Shown piece after piece: positions 3,990 through 31,401 of a DNA stretch of 37,919 bases. Each line of letters begins with the position of its first letter. The first letter of the stretch is position 1. The notes beneath the pieces are model-generated. The model saw only the letters and a program-made list of their open reading frames with translations. It had not been told where the DNA came from and did not search any database. The position numbers and the translations under genes are program-made. The stretch is from the sequence record MK064562.1; one strand, 5' to 3'.

Positions 3990-4278
3990 CTATACTATAT
4001 ATTTACTAAAGAAGTATTTAGATGTGGAAGTAAAGGGTAATGCAATAAATATTTATAATTTTAAGCGTTTATCTGTAGAGGATTTGAACGGATATGTTGT
4101 AATCACGGCATTTTTTGAATGGGGTTTAATTCGAAAACATTACGAAAAGCTTATTTTCATCATATCAAATCAGAATGTAACGTTAGATATACACGGTATG
4201 ACATTACGGTTTAAGGGTAGTGTGAATATCTATTCTTATGGTGACTACGTGACTTTTGTCATATATGTTTATGAGTAG
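3901..4278 (+). CDS. Hypothetical protein (start probably near 3970)
   Basis: 125-aa ORF overlapping the previous gene. Confidence 0.65.
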   Translation: MCCIGITGVHITILPCIERVRGYVKLSLSNYTIYLLKKYLDVEVKGNAINIYNFKRLSVEDLNGYVVITAFFEWGLIRKHYEKLIFIISNQNVTLDIHGMTLRFKGSVNIYSYGDYVTFVIYVYE

Positions 4279-4416
4279 TTAGTTTTTTTGTGTCTTTAGG
4301 TTTTGTGGGTTGATGTTGATGGTGTAATATAGTTAGTTAGAAGTGAGTGTTTTATGGTGATTTATATAAAAAATATAATTGGTTGTAATAGGTTTAAATG
4401 ATTAGGGGTATGGTTT

Positions 4417-5076
4417 ATGAGTAAAATATACATTCTATTTTGGCAAGCTTTTTCCCTACCCATTGCATATATTGTTACTAACGTATATCTTAATATTGGT
4501 AACTATGTTGTCCAGTTGGATAAATTTTTCCACGTTAAATTTTTATTTAATCTCCCTGAAAGTTGGTTTCTAGCTTTAATAATATTTCTTGCCATATTTA
4601 TATTTCCTAACTTCTATGTATTTATATCTCTTCATTTCATGAAGAAAGATTTTATTAATAGAAAAATTCAGCAAGATATACATATAAAGCCTTACGAACA
4701 ATATATAGAAATAAATAACATGAGTTATACTATAAGGGATACTTTAGATAATCAATTAATATGTTTCATTTTAGTTTCCGTACTTTCTTTCATTATAAAT
4801 TATTCTTCCTTAATTCTTCTGTTGTTATATTCTGTTACACTAATTATAATAAGTATGGTGTACGTAGAAGGTTCGTTAATAGTCATAAACCCCTACTTAC
4901 GGTTCAAATATAATATTTTTATCTTGCGAAGTGGTGATAAAACACTTTATATTATTATGGAGAAGGAGAAAGAGTTCGAAAGACCCAGATTTTCCGAATA
5001 TGTAATTGATTGGTATTACGACCATTTTATATTGATCGGGTTTAAAGATATCAGAGATAAGTTTACTTTTATTTAA
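4417..5076 (+). CDS. Multi-pass membrane protein, possibly KwaA-like
   Basis: About 4 hydrophobic segments; VYVEGSLIVINPYLRFKYNIF motif. Confidence 0.7.
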   Translation: MSKIYILFWQAFSLPIAYIVTNVYLNIGNYVVQLDKFFHVKFLFNLPESWFLALIIFLAIFIFPNFYVFISLHFMKKDFINRKIQQDIHIKPYEQYIEINNMSYTIRDTLDNQLICFILVSVLSFIINYSSLILLLLYSVTLIIISMVYVEGSLIVINPYLRFKYNIFILRSGDKTLYIIMEKEKEFERPRFSEYVIDWYYDHFILIGFKDIRDKFTFI

Positions 5077-12050: not shown

Positions 12051-12907
12051 TGAAAGGCTACGGGTGGGAGAACCAAGTAAAATATGAATACGTTAATGAA
12101 TACCCGTCTCCTTCACAAGTACCTAAGTTAATAGTGATAGGTGACCATATTTTTTTGCCTCAAATAGCCACACGATATGAAAAAGTTGTAATGTGGACTG
12201 ATACACCTCTCGTTGATTGTAATTTCATAAAAAGTGATAATATAGTGTTCGTACCGGCTTCAAATTTCGTTAAGGCAATACTGGAAAACTGTGAAGTTAA
12301 AAACATTACGGAGGTCGTGCATAAACCCATGACTGTGAGAAATTTAGACGTTAAGAAGGAATACGACCTTGTGACCGTTTTGACTCAGCCATTTCGAAAA
12401 GGACATGATATACTGGGAAGGGTTCTTAGAAAGTTAGACAACATGACAGATAAGACTGTAACGTTACGTTTACGTGTACATCAGGATATCAGGCTTTTCT
12501 TCACTAACTTTAAGAAGATAAAAATTACAGACATTCCGGAAACTTCAAATTACGTTGATTTTCTTAAGGAGGTAGGGAAAAGTAGGGTAATGTTGTTCCC
12601 GTCGCAAGTTGAAGGGATAGGTTATCCTGCCATTGAGAGTGTCGTGTTAAATCAACAACTTATAATGGGTGATATTGACGCTACAAGGGAGTTCGTGAAC
12701 GTTAAGTCCGCTAGGCTCACGGATGTTAAACTTGTTTTATCACCCAATACGAATCACTGGTTCTTGTTCCAATACTATGATGAGGATGAGTATTTAGAAT
12801 TGTTAATGAAAGCACTTAATGATGAGAAAGTGTGTAAGCCTACAATAAAGACTGAGGATATATTTTATGTAGAAGAATTATATAAAAAAGTATTTGAATT
12901 TATTTAA
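12050..12907 (+). CDS. GT-B (GT4-like) glycosyltransferase
   Basis: FVPASNF, FRKGHD, FPSQVEGIGYPAIES (E-x7-E). Confidence 0.9.
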   Translation: MKGYGWENQVKYEYVNEYPSPSQVPKLIVIGDHIFLPQIATRYEKVVMWTDTPLVDCNFIKSDNIVFVPASNFVKAILENCEVKNITEVVHKPMTVRNLDVKKEYDLVTVLTQPFRKGHDILGRVLRKLDNMTDKTVTLRLRVHQDIRLFFTNFKKIKITDIPETSNYVDFLKEVGKSRVMLFPSQVEGIGYPAIESVVLNQQLIMGDIDATREFVNVKSARLTDVKLVLSPNTNHWFLFQYYDEDEYLELLMKALNDEKVCKPTIKTEDIFYVEELYKKVFEFI

Positions 12908-12924
12908 TACGCCTATACGGCTTG

Positions 12925-13194
12925 TTATAGTCCTCCTAATAGTCTTCTGAATACTCCACCTAAGCCTCTGAATACGCCTATTCTTCCGAACGCTCCCAGC
13001 ACTAAGGCTATTACTACTCCTATTACAGCCACAACTCCGAACAGTTGACCTAATGGGTTAGCGAAGCTACTTAAAACGTTTGCAAGGCTTTGTACGGCAT
13101 ATGCTATAAAGCTTATGAAGCTTGTTAACAATGATGTTAGGGCATTTGTTAAGGTCGTTATAGCTGAACTTATGCTACTCACGATCTCTAACAC
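12925..13194 (-). CDS. Small membrane protein, amphipathic N-terminus, TM and basic Gly-rich C-terminus (candidate envelope protein)
   Basis: 89 aa from GTG 13194 (GTG 13182 also fits the GAGGTG SD); GVVAVIGVVIALVLGAFG. Confidence 0.8.
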   Translation of the reverse strand: MLEIVSSISSAITTLTNALTSLLTSFISFIAYAVQSLANVLSSFANPLGQLFGVVAVIGVVIALVLGAFGRIGVFRGLGGVFRRLLGGL

Positions 13195-13294
13195 CTCTTA
13201 TGTATACATCTTGTGTATTTTCGTATAAAAGTAGTAAATGGTGGGTTTCGGTAAACCGGTGGGTATTTATATTTGTGCGGGATAGATTTACATT

Positions 13295-13840
13295 GTGGAG
13301 AACGAATGGCTAGCCCAACTAAAACAGGCGATGAGCAAGGAGATCAAAGCGATAAAGAAAAGAGGAGTGGACGTACAAGTAATACAAAACCCGGGGGAGT
13401 TGAAAGTAGTGATAGACCTCAAGACGTTGATAAAGAAAATGAGGGAGGAAGCGAAACAAGAGCTAATGAAACAATTCAAACTAACCCCGTTCCAAGTGAC
13501 GTTCAGGACAGTGAACAACGTGGAACTAGCGATGAGCCAAATAACGGGAGTGATGACGGAGGAGGACAAGATGAAACTGATAGCGTTGGAAAAACAATAT
13601 CAAGATATGTTCCAATGGAATTACAACGACAAAAAACACCAGCTAAAAGTAGCAATAGTATTGAACAAGTTTTACGAGAAAGAATTGAACGAGATAATCC
13701 AGAGAATCAACCAGAACTTAGCGGAAGCCCTAGCACTGATGAGAGTGCAAGGGGTGGACATGCTGGACTACGAGATCAAAGTGGACAAGAACCTGGTGGT
13801 AAGAGTCTTTACAACATCCCAAGTTTCCAACAATTCCTGA
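13295..13840 (+). CDS. Hypothetical globular/helical protein (ancestral frame of the dual-coding region)
   Basis: 181 aa, GTG about 25 nt downstream of TATTTATA; normal protein composition. Confidence 0.8.
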   Translation: MENEWLAQLKQAMSKEIKAIKKRGVDVQVIQNPGELKVVIDLKTLIKKMREEAKQELMKQFKLTPFQVTFRTVNNVELAMSQITGVMTEEDKMKLIALEKQYQDMFQWNYNDKKHQLKVAIVLNKFYEKELNEIIQRINQNLAEALALMRVQGVDMLDYEIKVDKNLVVRVFTTSQVSNNS

Positions 13841-14199
13841 ATAGAAAAGTTACAGGGTACACTCCCGGTAACCTAAATAAGAACGAGATTATCGCGTTAT
13901 TCCGAAGCCTACCTCTTGAGGTAAGATTAGAGGAGAGCGTGAGGACACTTAACGAGTTTCGAGGTATCGAGAAACGGTGGAAGAGTGTGATAGATGGTTT
14001 AGCACTTACGAGTGACAAGTATAAGGAGGCTGTAAGTAGGAAGCCCATTAGTACTAGATTGGTTGAACGTATTGTTGACGCGTTTGAGGGATATCTATCA
14101 AAGGCTATGGCGGGTGGGATAAGCGTCCAGGAAAGGGATAGGCTGAAACAAACGATATCAGAAGTCCTAATGGAGGAGGAAAATGAAGGACAGTCGTGA
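13306..14199 (+). CDS. Overprinted protein: acidic disordered N-terminus plus globular C-terminal domain
   Basis: 297 aa from ATG 13306 (GGAG upstream); the only long + ORF covering 13841-14182; overlaps the next gene start. Confidence 0.7.
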   Translation: MASPTKTGDEQGDQSDKEKRSGRTSNTKPGGVESSDRPQDVDKENEGGSETRANETIQTNPVPSDVQDSEQRGTSDEPNNGSDDGGGQDETDSVGKTISRYVPMELQRQKTPAKSSNSIEQVLRERIERDNPENQPELSGSPSTDESARGGHAGLRDQSGQEPGGKSLYNIPSFQQFLNRKVTGYTPGNLNKNEIIALFRSLPLEVRLEESVRTLNEFRGIEKRWKSVIDGLALTSDKYKEAVSRKPISTRLVERIVDAFEGYLSKAMAGGISVQERDRLKQTISEVLMEEENEGQS

Positions 14200-14449
14200 A
14201 AGTATAATATTTAAGGTATCAATACAAGATAGGCTCGAACTTGATGAACTCGTGAGGAGGCTTGGTTTTCCATCACGTCACGCTTTTTTTCTGGATATTG
14301 TAAGAGGTACGTTGACTGCAGTAGATAATCAAGATAGGGGTAGCTTATTCGTATATATCCCGGTACCCAGAACATTAATGCAAAAGTATTTTGAAAAAAA
14401 TGAATCGCTTCAAGAAATAGTCGTAAAACTCATTTTATCACTTACTTGA
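14183..14449 (+). CDS. Ribbon-helix-helix protein
   Basis: IIFKVSIQDRLELDELVRRLGFPSRHAFFLDIV; second strand-helix segment. Confidence 0.75.
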   Translation: MKDSRESIIFKVSIQDRLELDELVRRLGFPSRHAFFLDIVRGTLTAVDNQDRGSLFVYIPVPRTLMQKYFEKNESLQEIVVKLILSLT

Positions 14450-14851
14450 TTGCATGTTGAATATTATATAGTTCGTTGTAGTACTCTTCAAACTGTCTAT
14501 ATAGTCCATAAACTCATCTAACATTGCTTCATCCAGTCCTCTTAACCAGTATTTATGCCTTAAGGCAATCTTTAACCTCTTTATCACTTCACCGCTTTGT
14601 TTCGTATTTAACACTTTAACGTATTCATTTGCTAACTGTCTGTAGAGTATCCTTAGGTTCCCCCCGACACCGTGAGCGTTAAGCCAAGGTATTAACGCTT
14701 GGTTTACTACACTGTAGAAGTTCATTATGTTCTGTGCTTGTACTACCATGTCTTTCGTGGCGTTCTTATATGCGGTTTGTTCTGTCTTAGCTTTTACACT
14801 ATACTTGGTAATCGCGTCTTCGGTTGTTATACCGGTTCTTCTGGAGGGCAT
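14438..14851 (-). CDS. Major capsid protein 2 (SIRV2-type fold)
   Basis: 137 aa; basic N-terminus; LNAHGVGGNLRILYRQLA resembles the rudivirus/lipothrixvirus MCP LxxxGhxGxxxxhY segment. Confidence 0.88.
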   Translation of the reverse strand: MPSRRTGITTEDAITKYSVKAKTEQTAYKNATKDMVVQAQNIMNFYSVVNQALIPWLNAHGVGGNLRILYRQLANEYVKVLNTKQSGEVIKRLKIALRHKYWLRGLDEAMLDEFMDYIDSLKSTTTNYIIFNMQSSK

Positions 14852-15450
14852 CACGCACCACCCTTAACACCGATTATTTCCTCAGGTGATTTAGCTTGTA
14901 GAACTTCCTGGATTGGAGCCGAGAAGCCTGTTGGCGAACTTATAGGTACTGGAGGTAATGGTGATCTAGGCGTTACAAGACACGCTCCTTCACGTTCTTC
15001 AGCCTCAAAAGGCTCTACTCCAACCCAAACTGCGAATATACTATTTATTAATGACACAGCTTCCTCACAGCTAACTCTTGTACCGTATAAGTTTTCGGTT
15101 AACGTCATAGTAGCCGTCCCTGCTACGTTGATCGCGATCTCATTCGATCCTAACTTCTCGTTACTATACTTTAACCATGACGTGAAAATCTTCATTAAAG
15201 CTAACTTAATCTCATTTACGTATGGTAAGTCTTGTGGAGAGGCTCCGCTCTTGATTGCCTCATCTATTACGTTTGCGAGATATTGCTTGAACTCGTTCTC
15301 AACCATGTGTAGTGACTTGAAACCGTTCTCAAAATTCGCTATCCTATACTTCGCTGATTCATCGTAGGCGTCACCCATAGTTTGCAATTTTCGTACATAG
15401 TTTAGATACATTCGCAGTGGGTCATTTTTTGATGTTCTTTTTCTAGCCAT
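14851..15450 (-). CDS. Major capsid protein 1
   Basis: 199 aa from MARKRTSK; tandem with MCP2; matches my recall of the SFV1 large MCP. Confidence 0.85.
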   Translation of the reverse strand: MARKRTSKNDPLRMYLNYVRKLQTMGDAYDESAKYRIANFENGFKSLHMVENEFKQYLANVIDEAIKSGASPQDLPYVNEIKLALMKIFTSWLKYSNEKLGSNEIAINVAGTATMTLTENLYGTRVSCEEAVSLINSIFAVWVGVEPFEAEEREGACLVTPRSPLPPVPISSPTGFSAPIQEVLQAKSPEEIIGVKGGA

Positions 15451-26708: not shown

Positions 26709-27588
26709 TAAAATGCCCGTTACTACCGATTTCATCAATTTAGCAGAACAACTTACACTTAACGGATATAAGAGTACATCCGCATATGTACAAGGTCTCC
26801 AAGTCCAAAGTACGTTCTACATAGTCCTGTTAAATAACGGGAACGTGGTAGCACAACTCCCCGTTTCACAATTCAAGTATAACGAAATAAGCCAAAACGA
26901 GCAAGCACTTGTATACACTGCAATTGACAGTAGTTCAAACACGTATACGTTCAACGAGGTACAATTATGGGCTGGTAACCAATACATTATAACAGATGAT
27001 ATACTACAACAGAGCGTTACGAAAAACCCGGGAATTTCCGTAACCGTAAACGTTGCAATAGAGCTTTCAATAGAGACTAATACTTATCAAGGAACGATCA
27101 ACATAACACGTATAACACCCGTAGGACCTGTGCAAACACCGATCCCGGCATACTCATTCTGGTTATACGTATCGGGTAACTGTCACGCCATATCCACACC
27201 CATCTTCATAGTAAATTACATCATCCTCACGTTACTTATACCAACGTCATTCTATAATAATATACAAAACACGTTGTTCATGCAAACGTATAACCAACTA
27301 AACGTCCCCATAAACGAGTTTAACGGAATCTCACTAATTGCCGTAGCGTTACCTTCAGCGATTATAAATATCGCAAATAGGCTAATCCCGCAAAGCGTGT
27401 CTTATCAATGTACGACCTTACCACCTAATACACCGTTTAAACCTTCCACGACATATTCCTCAACTCTTGTAGGAGCATTCATGGACATGGGAGGAATTAA
27501 AGTACAAGTAATAACAATACTCAATAAGCAACTACTCGCCACAACAAACTATTACATATTTCAAATAGTGGTGATACAAAATGAGTAA
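26701..27588 (+). CDS. Putative virion protein, paralog family member 6
   Basis: 295 aa; YTFNEVQLW, VTKNPGISVTV. Confidence 0.8.
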   Translation: MSDKMPVTTDFINLAEQLTLNGYKSTSAYVQGLQVQSTFYIVLLNNGNVVAQLPVSQFKYNEISQNEQALVYTAIDSSSNTYTFNEVQLWAGNQYIITDDILQQSVTKNPGISVTVNVAIELSIETNTYQGTINITRITPVGPVQTPIPAYSFWLYVSGNCHAISTPIFIVNYIILTLLIPTSFYNNIQNTLFMQTYNQLNVPINEFNGISLIAVALPSAIINIANRLIPQSVSYQCTTLPPNTPFKPSTTYSSTLVGAFMDMGGIKVQVITILNKQLLATTNYYIFQIVVIQNE

Positions 27589-29332
27589 CCCACTAATAGA
27601 TATCGAGAAATTATTTACCGGCATTTTCAGACCCGTCACTAACGTACTTAGCGGAGGCATTAACACAGTAGCGTCAATTCCTCATGATATCGAAAATTTC
27701 GGGAACTCGGTTGTGAAGACATTTAACACACTAGTACGATATCTCGCACAAATACCAAGTGATATATTCAACTTTCTATCACAAATTCCCGGTGCGATCC
27801 TCACCGGGTTACACATGTTCGGTTCATGGATACTCTCAGGGTTCCAAACTTTAGGTTCCCACATATTGGGAGCGTTAAAAATAGCGTTCTCACCACTGGT
27901 TGACGCCATACATTACATAGCATCCCATATACCCGACCTAATAAACTTCTTCGCTTCAATCTACACCGACCTAAGAAACATTATAAACACGATACATAAC
28001 AACCTTGTAAATATCTTCACAACAGCGTTCAGACTCGTACAAGACGCGATTGAAATCGTGTTCGGCTTCCTAAACGTGGCTCCTCAGATATTCAGAGCAT
28101 TTAGTATATTTGTACAAGATGCAATAAATTTCGTAACAACACAAGCTACAACACTAGTATCATCCGCATCACAAATGTACAAACACTTTACGGACTCAGT
28201 ACCCTTTGACATCTTAAAACAAGAATCATCAAAATTCGGCAAAGCTACGGCAAGATTGATCGGGTTTAACACTGCAATGGAAATAATGAAAAGTACAATA
28301 AGAAGGAGTTGGCTATCACAAAACATATCACCCTTAACAAGGGCGTTAATGTTAGCGTTCAGCCCTGTGGTAGCAGGTATCAGCGGGATGTTTGCGGAAA
28401 CAATGATACAAGCGTTCTACCCGGATATCACATCAACAACAATAAAGAGGTACACGCCACCAACCACATCCACGACACTATTCCCGTATCATACAACTCA
28501 TGTAGAACCACCATCGTTCGCGTCAAAGAGTTACATAACAACACTGTCACAATTAACACCACCATCGGCTCCTCCATTGTTACCGCAATTCAAACCGGGT
28601 CACATAATAAGCATATACATCGAAGACGTCATAACACTAAACCAGTTCGTAGTAACCGGTGGTCTGGTATCAGCATCACAGTACGCACAAATAATATCCG
28701 ACACATTAAACTTACAGTACAATTTAGTGGTAAGACTGACACCCGTAGTTTTAATATCCGCCACAGACTTAGTAAGTCCCTTACTATCATCATCCATTAC
28801 CACAGCAGTCTCACAAAACGTGAACACGATCACAGTAAACGCTTTCGCAGAAGTAGGACAACTAGCAGTACCCCTAGGTTCATCTGTGTGTACCACGTTA
28901 ATAGCTCCGGCTTCATACGTTTACGGTGAAAACACGGTAGATTACTTAAATGTAGCATACAACTTATGTATAAACATAAACCAGGCAATACTTGACTTCA
29001 TTAACTTCTACATCACAACACAACCACCACCCGGTAATGTACCCACTACTACTGTAAACATCTTCATCACAACACAACCACCACCCGGTAACGTACCTAC
29101 AACTGTAGTAAACATTACGGGTACTACAATATTACCTCCTCCTAATATACCAACCACCATATTCAGTATAACAATAACACCCGGATTACCACAATTCACG
29201 GGACACACTACCCTTGCGTTCACAACTCAAAACGTGACAACCAGAATCGGAGGGACTGCTACAACAATAGTTATAAATTACACGCCAACTATAACAATAT
29301 GCCTACAAGGGGATGGATGTTATTCAGCGTGA
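27581..29332 (+). CDS. Large putative virion protein: 11-mer amphipathic repeats plus Pro/Thr-rich C-terminus
   Basis: 583 aa; AQIPSDIFNFL/SQIPGAILTGL/HMFGSWILSGF; ITTQPPPGNVPTT repeats. Confidence 0.8.
   Translation: MSNPLIDIEKLFTGIFRPVTNVLSGGINTVASIPHDIENFGNSVVKTFNTLVRYLAQIPSDIFNFLSQIPGAILTGLHMFGSWILSGFQTLGSHILGALKIAFSPLVDAIHYIASHIPDLINFFASIYTDLRNIINTIHNNLVNIFTTAFRLVQDAIEIVFGFLNVAPQIFRAFSIFVQDAINFVTTQATTLVSSASQMYKHFTDSVPFDILKQESSKFGKATARLIGFNTAMEIMKSTIRRSWLSQNISPLTRALMLAFSPVVAGISGMFAETMIQAFYPDITSTTIKRYTPPTTSTTLFPYHTTHVEPPSFASKSYITTLSQLTPPSAPPLLPQFKPGHIISIYIEDVITLNQFVVTGGLVSASQYAQIISDTLNLQYNLVVRLTPVVLISATDLVSPLLSSSITTAVSQNVNTITVNAFAEVGQLAVPLGSSVCTTLIAPASYVYGENTVDYLNVAYNLCININQAILDFINFYITTQPPPGNVPTTTVNIFITTQPPPGNVPTTVVNITGTTILPPPNIPTTIFSITITPGLPQFTGHTTLAFTTQNVTTRIGGTATTIVINYTPTITICLQGDGCYSA
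29011..29118 (+). repeat. 54-bp tandem repeat (2 near-identical copies plus a degenerate third)
   Basis: CATCACAACACAACCACCACCCGGTAA at 29011 and 29065. Confidence 0.9.
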
Positions 29333-29923: not shown

Positions 29924-31401
29924 AATATTTTATCCGCGAGCTTTTCACCCAGTACATCACGTATAATATCACGTTTAGAACATAAATTATACCTAGTAAC
30001 ACCACTCCTGAATAGTTTGTACGCCCTCATCCTACCTATATACGGTATATCTATAAGTCTAGCTATTTCCCTAACGTTTTCTAAAGGTATGCCGTAGCGT
30101 AAAGCCAAACTTATGTCATCATACCTGTCATCCTTAAATAAAGCCATAATGTGAGCCTTATAACTAGCCTCTTGAAGTAATTTATACTCACCGTACCCTA
30201 TCTTATCAAGGTTGATAGCCCTTTTGAACAACCCGTATAACTCCCTATCACTCATTACACCGAAAGCATTACACTCCTCGGCAACGTCCAAGCTTGAAGG
30301 TCTCATTAAATAAGACAAGACACACAGTCTGTAATCATCAGAATCTATACGATAATAATCAAAGTCCATGATCCTCTTGGCGTCAACGGGGTGGACAAGG
30401 TGATAAGCAATACTCTTCAATAACTTGTGGTCACATATACCGTATTTCTTACATATATACTCAGTATCTCCGCCTATCATCTTCGCGAAATCAATGTCAT
30501 ATTCAGTAGGAGTAAACTTAGCGGGGTCACTTAAATTACGTACGTCAAATGTAACATATATAACACCTTTACCACGTCTACCGACCCTACCAGCGAACTG
30601 GATAAATGAAGTCTTATCAAGGTACCTATTTGACGTAAATATGCCGTAGTCAAAATGGTAATCAACACCGTAGTTAAGTGCTGTAGTAGTACATATAACC
30701 TTGATCTCACCTAGCTCAAGCAAACGTGACACTTTTTCTCTATCGCTAGCACTCATTTGACTGTTATAATAAGCTACACCCTTCCTAAGTAATTGACCCA
30801 AGACCGGGTCATCGGTGTCAACGTCAACACCGTCCATGAAAAAGTCAGCAAGCTTAAGGCACATTGTCCTCGTTAATTCCGTTGAATGAACGTAAATGAA
30901 ACCATACTTACCCGGATCCACATACTTACGCCAATCATCCACCTTGATTATCTCGTATTGGCTACCGTTCTCCCCTAAATCAATTACATCATCAAACTTA
31001 ACTGAAATATCAACAGGCGTAGCACTGATGAAATAACGCCTATACCCGGTCGTATTAGCAATTGAAGAGTAAATAACATGAGAAAATAACTTATTAGCTA
31101 TAAGACTATATTCATCAAAAATTATAACGTCATTGTGAGTAGCACTTGAAGGGTTATCATGAAGAGATAAAAATTGGTTAAACTGGTTATAAGTGAAAAC
31201 GTATATCTTGTACGTCTTGTCAAAATTATTACCCACAATATCTCCGTAAAGTTGACTATAACGTTGATATAATTGTATCGCTAAACTCCTTAAAGGAACA
31301 AGATGAAAAACGCGGTGATATCTAGATACGAAATCACCGGCTTTACTTATCATCAAACGTGTTTTACCGCTTCCCGTTTTCCCCTTTACAAGTATATCCA
31401 T
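29887..31401 (-). CDS. Superfamily 2 helicase, Ski2/Hel308(Hjm)-like
   Basis: GKTGSGKT, DEYS, ISATP, TTALNYGVD, QFAGRVGRRG, C-terminal HhH IPYIGRMRAYKL. Confidence 0.92.
   Translation of the reverse strand: MDILVKGKTGSGKTRLMISKAGDFVSRYHRVFHLVPLRSLAIQLYQRYSQLYGDIVGNNFDKTYKIYVFTYNQFNQFLSLHDNPSSATHNDVIIFDEYSLIANKLFSHVIYSSIANTTGYRRYFISATPVDISVKFDDVIDLGENGSQYEIIKVDDWRKYVDPGKYGFIYVHSTELTRTMCLKLADFFMDGVDVDTDDPVLGQLLRKGVAYYNSQMSASDREKVSRLLELGEIKVICTTTALNYGVDYHFDYGIFTSNRYLDKTSFIQFAGRVGRRGKGVIYVTFDVRNLSDPAKFTPTEYDIDFAKMIGGDTEYICKKYGICDHKLLKSIAYHLVHPVDAKRIMDFDYYRIDSDDYRLCVLSYLMRPSSLDVAEECNAFGVMSDRELYGLFKRAINLDKIGYGEYKLLQEASYKAHIMALFKDDRYDDISLALRYGIPLENVREIARLIDIPYIGRMRAYKLFRSGVTRYNLCSKRDIIRDVLGEKLADKIFHFVCTSNSRDM

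Follow-up and report, generated by a model that had tools for sequence, protein, structure and literature searches.

Positions 13295 to 14199 of the genome of Sulfolobales Beppu filamentous phage 1 (SBFV1) probably contain a pair of overprinted genes on the same strand, which would encode two proteins and are conserved across the filamentous viruses similar to Sulfolobus filamentous virus 1 (SFV1). The window, i.e. the whole stretch of DNA analysed, is the deposited sequence MK064562 (record MK064562.1) of 37,919 bases, and its record describes it as a partial genome. The only GenBank gene in this region is ORF22-308a, a hypothetical protein located at 13273-14199, which corresponds to the longer of the two open reading frames (ORFs), frame B, with an annotated TTG start at 13273. 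The shorter one, frame A, is unannotated in the records of SFV1, SBFV1 and SBFV2, and only the long ORF is listed in all three. A preliminary description of the sequence had placed a frame of 181 amino acids (aa) within an ORF of 297 aa of the plus strand, and all the points that it described were found where it had located them; it had also treated the 181-aa frame as the gene, which does not agree with the GenBank annotation, where only the long frame appears. SFV1 (MH447526), isolated and sequenced independently, shows 100% identity with SBFV1 over 12900-14500, and both belong to the genus Alphalipothrixvirus. The features of the pair are the following:

13264-13271, plus strand: TATA-like box TATTTATA, read straight from the sequence.
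13295-13840, plus strand: frame A, GTG start and TGA end, 181 aa, with a helix and a beta-hairpin predicted four times.
13297-13300, plus strand: GGAG motif, read from the sequence.
13306-14199, plus strand: frame B, ATG start and TGA end, 297 aa, in the +2 (= -1) frame of A.
13306-13839, plus strand: overprinted segment of B, 178 codons embedded in A.
13840-14196, plus strand: C-terminal helical domain of B, outside the overlap, conserved from about 13807 and with an acidic tail at its end.

Frame A of SBFV1 is poor in codons ending in T (T3), with only seven out of 182 (3.8%) and none within the first ~90 codons. This frequency is below those of all 55 other ORFs of the genome, which range from 12.7 to 58%; the upstream gene, encoding a glycosyltransferase, shows 33.7% and the non-overlapped end of B shows 26%. 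The preliminary description, which had reported about seven NNT codons out of 181 between flanks rich in NNT and had proposed the comparison with the genome, was thus accurate. If the protein encoded by A is recoded with the codon usage of the genome, around 13 stops are expected in frame B and the probability of finding none is ~7e-8. If the T-poor codons of A are kept and shuffled among synonymous positions, B is open in 1.2% of the shuffles and, in the reverse test, the B sequence with the codon usage of the genome leaves A open in 0.3% of the trials. The -1 frame of 39 other genes of the genome contains between 2 and 86 stops in every one of them. The overlap of two open frames of the same strand along 178 codons far exceeds the length expected by chance, and the open second frame over A is not a product of chance.

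Seven lineages with the pair were found: SBFV1/SFV1, SBFV2, L011, L009, L010 (= L027), L017 (= L028) and the L013 type, separated by branch lengths of ~1 substitution per amino-acid site. The new lineages come solely from an exhaustive hidden Markov model search with the C-terminal domain of B against 1.84 billion proteins, which gave five relatives. Their contigs contain SFV1-type VP4 and VP5 genes (Pfam SFV1_VP4 and SFV1_VP5) wherever they reach far enough, and a gp23-type gene follows the A/B pair in all the lineages with a sufficiently long contig. A homologue of A is present in all seven lineages, and the -1 frame over it shows no stop across 170-196 codons in any of them; stops in the second frame of relatives, which the preliminary description had named as evidence against the pair, are absent. 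The +1 frame holds 26-36 stops, and therefore the openness is specific to the -1 frame. Other searches added no lineage: tblastn and blastn against the phage collection, with the capsid protein among the queries, found only SFV1, SBFV1 and SBFV2; a word-indexed protein search with B, A and the alignment of A recovered nothing beyond B and the A copy of L017; metagenome pattern scans and a scan of the genome collection with VP4 gave no match; and IMG/VR scans found only SFV1 and SBFV2 with A, the C-terminal domain and the A alignment as queries, and no match with queries from the relatives. Two contigs show a shortened A. In L015, a metagenome contig of the L013 type, A (2366-2971) has a premature stop within five changes to T in 37 nucleotides (nt) and B is open, and in L026 (1501-2097) A ends three codons early. 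Both truncations may be assembly errors or defective variants.

Stops are avoided in the second frame beyond what the T-poor codons of A explain. When synonymous codons were shuffled within each A, keeping the protein and its own T-poor codon usage, B remained open in 0.07-11% of the trials per lineage, which gives a Fisher combined p of 4.7e-7 for the seven lineages. The avoidance also depends on the residue. The T at third positions of A was classified by the codon that it creates in B, and the totals over the seven lineages were compared with the expected ones: codons for a stop (0 observed, 83 expected) and for Cys (0 and 31.7) are absent, those for Trp (2 and 7.9), Tyr (15 and 36.6, ratio 0.41), Phe (14 and 25.7, ratio 0.55) and Ser (34 and 53) are reduced, and those for Leu (11 and 11.2, ratio 0.98) are as expected. 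The 39 other SBFV1 genes, used as control, show ratios of 1.25 for stop, 0.92 for Cys, 0.52 for Trp, 0.96 for Tyr, 0.98 for Phe, 1.15 for Leu and 0.75 for Ser. The two outgroup genes, AFV1 ORF221 and SIFV0034, show 20 stops against 18 expected and 17 against 16.3, respectively, and no shortage of Cys codons (14 against 8.3 expected in one gene and 10 against 9.5 in the other); their remaining codon classes scatter on small counts. On these counts, the absence of Cys, the partial loss of aromatic residues and the unaffected Leu form a filter on amino acids and not on nucleotides. Since the residue-specific avoidance is absent from the controls, the embedded part of B appears to be translated. 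The claim that T-avoidance removes the stops of B, made from the SBFV1 sequence alone, holds for the stops but falls short of the whole effect, which also includes Cys, Tyr and Phe.

The same selection is visible within the population of the L013 type, in which B is open in all 11 variants, down to 84% nucleotide identity. These variants contain 65 polymorphic third positions of A, 17 of them involving T, and none gives a stop or Cys in B. Since 38 of the 101 possible synonymous changes to T would give a stop in this type, the probability of avoiding all of them is 0.624^17, ~3e-4. Selection for an open B thus seems to be ongoing in a lineage which has no canonical start for this frame.

Frame A shows the properties of an ordinary coding sequence. 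Between SBFV1 and SBFV2, which share ~65% nucleotide identity, the divergence at codon positions 1, 2 and 3 of A is 0.34, 0.24 and 0.49, which is a normal coding pattern. When the same DNA is read as B, the least divergent position is the third one of B, which is the second one of A (0.24-0.32 divergence), and the amino-acid identity over this DNA is 46% for A and 31% for the embedded part of B. The AlphaFold2 model of A, built from a two-sequence alignment, shows a helix plus beta-hairpin unit repeated four times, with a predicted local distance difference test (pLDDT) of 81 and a predicted template modelling score (pTM) of 0.68. Among predicted viral structures, Foldseek matched this model to AFV1 ORF221 (E = 9e-8, probability 1.0, template modelling (TM) score 0.47) and to B2CRK8, a 178-aa protein of Betalipothrixvirus uzonense (E = 1e-5). 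In the case of ORF221 the structures are predicted on both sides and none is solved. Neither A (TM below 0.3) nor B matched an entry of the PDB with Foldseek. A profile of seven A sequences aligned by hhalign with AFV1 ORF221 gave a 77% probability (E = 2e-5, 130 columns), and the comparison with the SIFV0034 profile gave just a match of 39 columns, a repeat unit, without significance.

The predicted fold of A is therefore common with two uncharacterised proteins of filamentous archaeal viruses, ORF221 and B2CRK8. In addition to the probable profile match, ORF221 has the same place and orientation as A relative to two capsid genes, since it is upstream of and convergent on ORF132 and ORF140. 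Unlike A, ORF221 has no second open frame (20 stops in its -1 frame, T3 of 26%) and shows an extra hydrophobic N-terminal segment of ~65 aa. On the positional divergence, the model and these relatives, frame A is a real, unannotated gene, and its product is predicted to be a folded alpha/beta protein. Comparison with the outgroups also makes A the ancestral frame, with the second frame added later in the SFV1-like lineage, because T3 is ordinary (24-26%) in ORF221 and SIFV0034, whose -1 frames contain 17-20 stops. SIFV0034 encodes 178 aa, adjoins the SIFV capsid genes (L006, 16396-17320) and contains a local match to A resembling the repeat unit (LKKFGIDAG...), and may correspond to A in Betalipothrixvirus, the genus given for SIFV in the taxonomy line of its record.

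The embedded part of B, or arm, contains 34 D+E, 21 K+R, 20 G and 35 S+T residues, no C and no W, and its serines are encoded for the most part by AGY codons. The model of B shows pLDDT below 50 at residues 1-115 and 134-170, and the arm is predicted to be disordered. Both the composition and the low pLDDT of most of the arm agree with the acidic, G/D/E/S/T-rich and disordered product of the second frame suggested in the preliminary description. For residues ~180-297, for which it had proposed a structure prediction, a conserved domain with helices at 172-294 is predicted, with a pLDDT of 55-73. This C-terminal domain shows 43% identity between SBFV1 and SBFV2, with an invariant LPLEVRLEE motif, and among the L013-type variants all 8 and all 7 differences within it are synonymous. 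No significant match to Pfam or PHROGs was obtained with A, B, the C-terminal domain or gp23, and the profile of the C-terminal domain showed none against SIFV0033 and AFV1 ORF137. In SBFV1, frame B contains no ATG, GTG or TTG between 13615 and 13939, and therefore no separate start is available for its C-terminal domain.

Across the lineages the helical domain is found with and without its own start. In five of the seven, an ATG in frame with it is located between -4 and +9 nt from the A stop; in L009 and L017 this ATG takes the form of ATGA stop-start overlaps at the end of A, and it is absent in SBFV1 and L010. Since these five lineages have their own ATG at the A stop, a short form containing only the helical domain is probably made in them by coupling to A, and in SBFV1 and L010, which lack such ATG, the helical domain depends on the long frame. 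The earlier statement that this domain has no usable start is thus correct for SBFV1 and L010 and does not extend to the other five lineages.

At the 5' end, an A/T-rich box centred ~25-29 nt before the A start can be recognised by eye in SBFV1, SBFV2, L011, L010 and L013 (from ATG 1845), and its placement is ambiguous in L009 and L017. By the rule for the spacing between archaeal promoter boxes and transcript starts, the TATTTATA box would put the transcript start at or adjoining GTG 13295, which fits a leaderless transcript. This box, ~25 nt before the GTG, and the GGAG that precedes ATG 13306 had both been pointed out before and are present. The start codon of frame B is located +8, +11 or +14 nt from the A start in six of the seven lineages, as ATG in five and TTG in L011, and arises from a conserved Trp codon of A (GAA-TGG). 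The annotated TTG 13273 is only 2 nt past the TATA-like box and upstream of the transcript start predicted from it. Furthermore, its 11 additional residues lack conservation in SBFV2, and the SBFV2 record uses a different upstream ATG. The annotated start is doubtful on these grounds, and ATG 13306, at the conserved start position, is the better one. In the L013 type, frame B has an ATT at +14, 6 nt after GGTGA, which is a candidate start. All 11 contigs of this type share an invariant GGGTGAGGAGGAATT near the beginning of A (L013 1848-1861), which holds the Shine-Dalgarno-like GGTGA and GGAGG right before the in-frame ATT of B.

In the arrangement that we favour, a promoter ~25 nt upstream would give a transcript starting at or adjoining GTG 13295. 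Initiation at this GTG would produce protein A (181 aa), the old folded alpha/beta protein of the AFV1 ORF221 family, which is located by the capsid genes in all these viruses, and initiation 11 nt later at ATG 13306, in the -1 frame, would read the 178 embedded codons and 119 further codons as protein B, formed by an acidic, cysteine-free, disordered arm and the conserved helical domain. The cost would be borne by the synonymous sites of A, whose third positions avoid any T giving a stop, Cys or an aromatic residue in B. The arm of B would have arisen by upstream extension of the gene for the downstream helical domain through A. Two proteins, the longer one with an overprinted and disordered N-terminal extension of ~178 aa, had already been proposed from SBFV1, and the comparative evidence from the seven lineages supports them. 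The transcript start, the use of both start codons, their ratio and any function are what we infer from these data. Since B stays open even where the helical domain has its own ATG, our best guess is that the long isoform has a role of its own beyond delivering this domain. The conserved location of A, the helical domain and the small next gene by the capsid genes suggests a role in regulation of the capsid genes or in assembly.

Several observations weigh against this interpretation. Only seven lineages are known, and no consistent Shine-Dalgarno motif precedes the B start across them. In the L013 type a TGA occupies the position of the B start, and frame B contains neither ATG nor GTG nor TTG ahead of the helical-domain ATG; a canonical 5' start is therefore not the whole story. 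The arm shows no sequence-specific conservation beyond that imposed by A: in the comparison of SBFV1 and SBFV2 with synonymous-codon shuffles, the synonymous-codon identity reaches a z of 3.2 and the -1 frame identity a z of 2.1, and ordinary genes reach 3.9 and 3.1, respectively. Nearly all the variants of the L013-type population alter B residues (95 versus 18). Such a lack of sequence-specific constraint would be expected of a disordered segment. Finally, the proteins of the SFV1 virion listed from liquid chromatography-tandem mass spectrometry are VP1-VP8, and the ORF21 product is not among them (PMC6105669). Protein A was probably invisible to the SFV1 virion proteomics if only annotated ORFs were searched.

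A more specific form of the proposal can be put forward tentatively, and we consider it rather doubtful as a whole. A leaderless mRNA would be decoded from two starts 8-14 nt apart, whose use would set the ratio between the folded protein and the long isoform, with perhaps a non-AUG start in one lineage, and the arm would have its own role. Such a role would be, for example, to hold basic capsid proteins or to mimic nucleic acid.

Another possibility, which we regard as unlikely, is that the products are limited to A and a separate protein with the helical domain and that the arm is untranslated, either left open by the T-poor, purine-rich codons or as a relic. The helical-domain ATG at the A stop in five of the seven lineages, two of them as ATGA overlaps typical of translational coupling, agrees with this explanation, as do the lack of a canonical start for the embedded part in the L013 type and the variable sequence of the arm. 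However, the distant 5' start is the only one available to the helical domain of SBFV1 and L010. The avoidance of stops exceeds that due to the T-poor codon usage and affects one frame only. The loss of Cys and the depletion of Tyr and Phe, with Leu unchanged, would make no sense unless this frame were translated, and the avoidance persists among the L013-type population variants.

Recoding, in which ribosomes that start in A undergo a frameshift, programmed or early, to -1 and produce A-to-B chimeras, is less probable still. It would account for B being the -1 frame of A, for the A stop falling at the onset of the conserved C-terminal domain in all lineages, and for the open B of the L013 type without any canonical start in frame. 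However, no X_XXY_YYZ heptamer is conserved: scattered, non-homologous sites are present in three lineages and none exists in A of the other four. A frameshift near the end of A needs no openness at the 5' end, but B is open from 8-14 nt after the A start, and six lineages carry a start codon exactly where B opens. Rfam gave no match to an RNA element in 13000-14600. Transcriptional slippage at an A6 run near 13630 was also considered and rejected, as this run is not conserved in SBFV2.

That GenBank is right, B being the sole gene and A a chance ORF, is almost certainly wrong. In its favour are the SFV1, SBFV1 and SBFV2 records with the long ORF only, but the divergence by codon position, together with the fold of A and its homology, excludes coding by B alone: the most conserved position, third in B and second in A, is the reverse of what such coding predicts, A exceeds B in identity (46% versus 31%) and in pLDDT (81 versus below 50 for the arm), a distant homologue of A occupies the same position in AFV1, and A is rarely open by chance given B (0.3% of trials). 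Equally hard to credit is a sequencing or assembly frameshift splitting one gene, A fused to the helical domain, since, although the end of A coincides with the beginning of the conserved C-terminal domain, the independently sequenced SFV1 and SBFV1 are identical here, the A stop and the same frame relation recur in all seven divergent lineages, which come from different samples, and such an error fails to explain a -1 frame open from the fifth codon of A on.

Overprinted pairs on the same strand are well known in small viruses, such as the overlapping genes of phiX174 and P/C of the paramyxoviruses (reviewed in PMC8227390, PMC6195259). As in the A/B pair, in these viruses a second long frame lies over an older gene of the same strand, the newer product is disordered and biased in composition, and the synonymous sites of the older gene are constrained; in paramyxovirus P/C two start codons are also close together near the 5' end. 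Unlike these pairs, A/B belongs to a double-stranded DNA virus of 38 kb with an archaeal host, whose genome is not size-limited, and the new frame is an N-terminal extension of a downstream gene through the whole upstream gene. Since the mRNA is probably leaderless, leaky scanning of the eukaryotic type does not apply to A/B. Programmed -1 ribosomal frameshifting has an archaeal example in fucA1 of Saccharolobus solfataricus. Recoding in archaea has been reviewed (PMC8211752). The fucA1 type resembles A/B in the -1 relation and in an upstream frame that stops where the downstream domain begins; A/B differs in lacking a conserved slippery heptamer and in having a -1 frame whose openness begins at the 5' end, with its own start there. 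In the human SRD5A1 triple coding, nearby AUGs are used in one mRNA (PMC13352861), and long products in different frames with start codons a few nucleotides apart are shared with A/B. SRD5A1 is eukaryotic and cap-dependent, whereas A/B belongs to an archaeal virus and is conserved across seven deeply diverged lineages. Our literature searches, whose coverage was incomplete, found neither a description of a long overlap on the same strand in archaeal viruses nor any reference to the A/B pair.

Overprinting itself is not new, and A/B adds to it unusually good comparative support and a missed core gene. The records of SFV1, SBFV1 and SBFV2, as well as the gene calls on the related metagenome contigs, miss the conserved core gene A, and the annotated start of the long frame is probably wrong in the same records. 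The locus offers a natural series, with an outgroup without overlap, seven deep lineages with overlap, a downstream domain with or without its own start, and one lineage without a canonical B start where selection on the frame seems to persist. The avoidance is graded, being absolute for stop and Cys, partial for aromatic residues and none for Leu, and shows directly which requirements selection imposes on a newly arisen disordered segment of a hyperthermophile. The locus is also a testable case of the choice by archaeal ribosomes between two starts a few nucleotides from the 5' end of the mRNA. If the two-start decoding is true, A/B would be, among archaeal viruses, the first documented example of a long dual-coding region and the first of 5'-proximal start choice.

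The A/B pair is followed by a small gene and by the capsid genes, on which the unit is convergent, as the preliminary description had indicated and as the annotation of VP4 and VP5 confirms:

14183-14449, plus strand: next gene, gp23, 88 aa, with an ATG after GGAGGA and a 17-nt overlap with the end of B.
14438-15450, minus strand: major capsid protein genes VP4 and VP5 (GenBank annotation), convergent on the A/B/gp23 unit.

The gp23 gene had been called a ribbon-helix-helix gene. The comparison with Pfam RHH_1 gives an E of 0.092 and 13.2 bits, below the cutoff of 20.5, and the gp23 orthologues show a faint NikA-like match, so that gp23 is possibly a ribbon-helix-helix protein and the earlier assignment was too firm. 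The gp23 and AFV1 ORF137 (L018, 9678-10091) genes have the same position after the gene of the A family, and their products show a common YIPVP motif, with an overall similarity below significance (E = 0.1).

Opposite to A/B there are antisense ORFs at 13288-13569, 13503-13655 and 13809-14048, all on the minus strand, and in L011 at 3995-4612 (minus strand), which reach up to 205 aa. As genes they were rejected: they are most simply by-products of the T-poor plus strand, and are long because this strand leaves few stops on the minus strand. Elsewhere in the genome, a 206-aa ORF at 28309-28929 (plus strand) is in the -1 frame of the gene at 27581-29332, which encodes 583 aa. Its frame shows a stop-free run of 219 codons, the longest alternative-frame run in any other gene. 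A second overlap inside this gene was considered and discarded, since SBFV2 has no matching ORF; the run looks like a chance product of a coding sequence rich in Thr, Ser and Pro. The C-terminal part of the same gene (~29000-29300) contains the tandem peptide repeat TTQPPPGNVPTT in two copies in SBFV1, and its SBFV2 counterpart (L007 ~31100-31400) contains LNFLISTSPPPPSQGIPTTE in three full copies plus a variant fourth, so that both the copy number and the sequence of the repeats of this large protein differ between SBFV1 and SBFV2.

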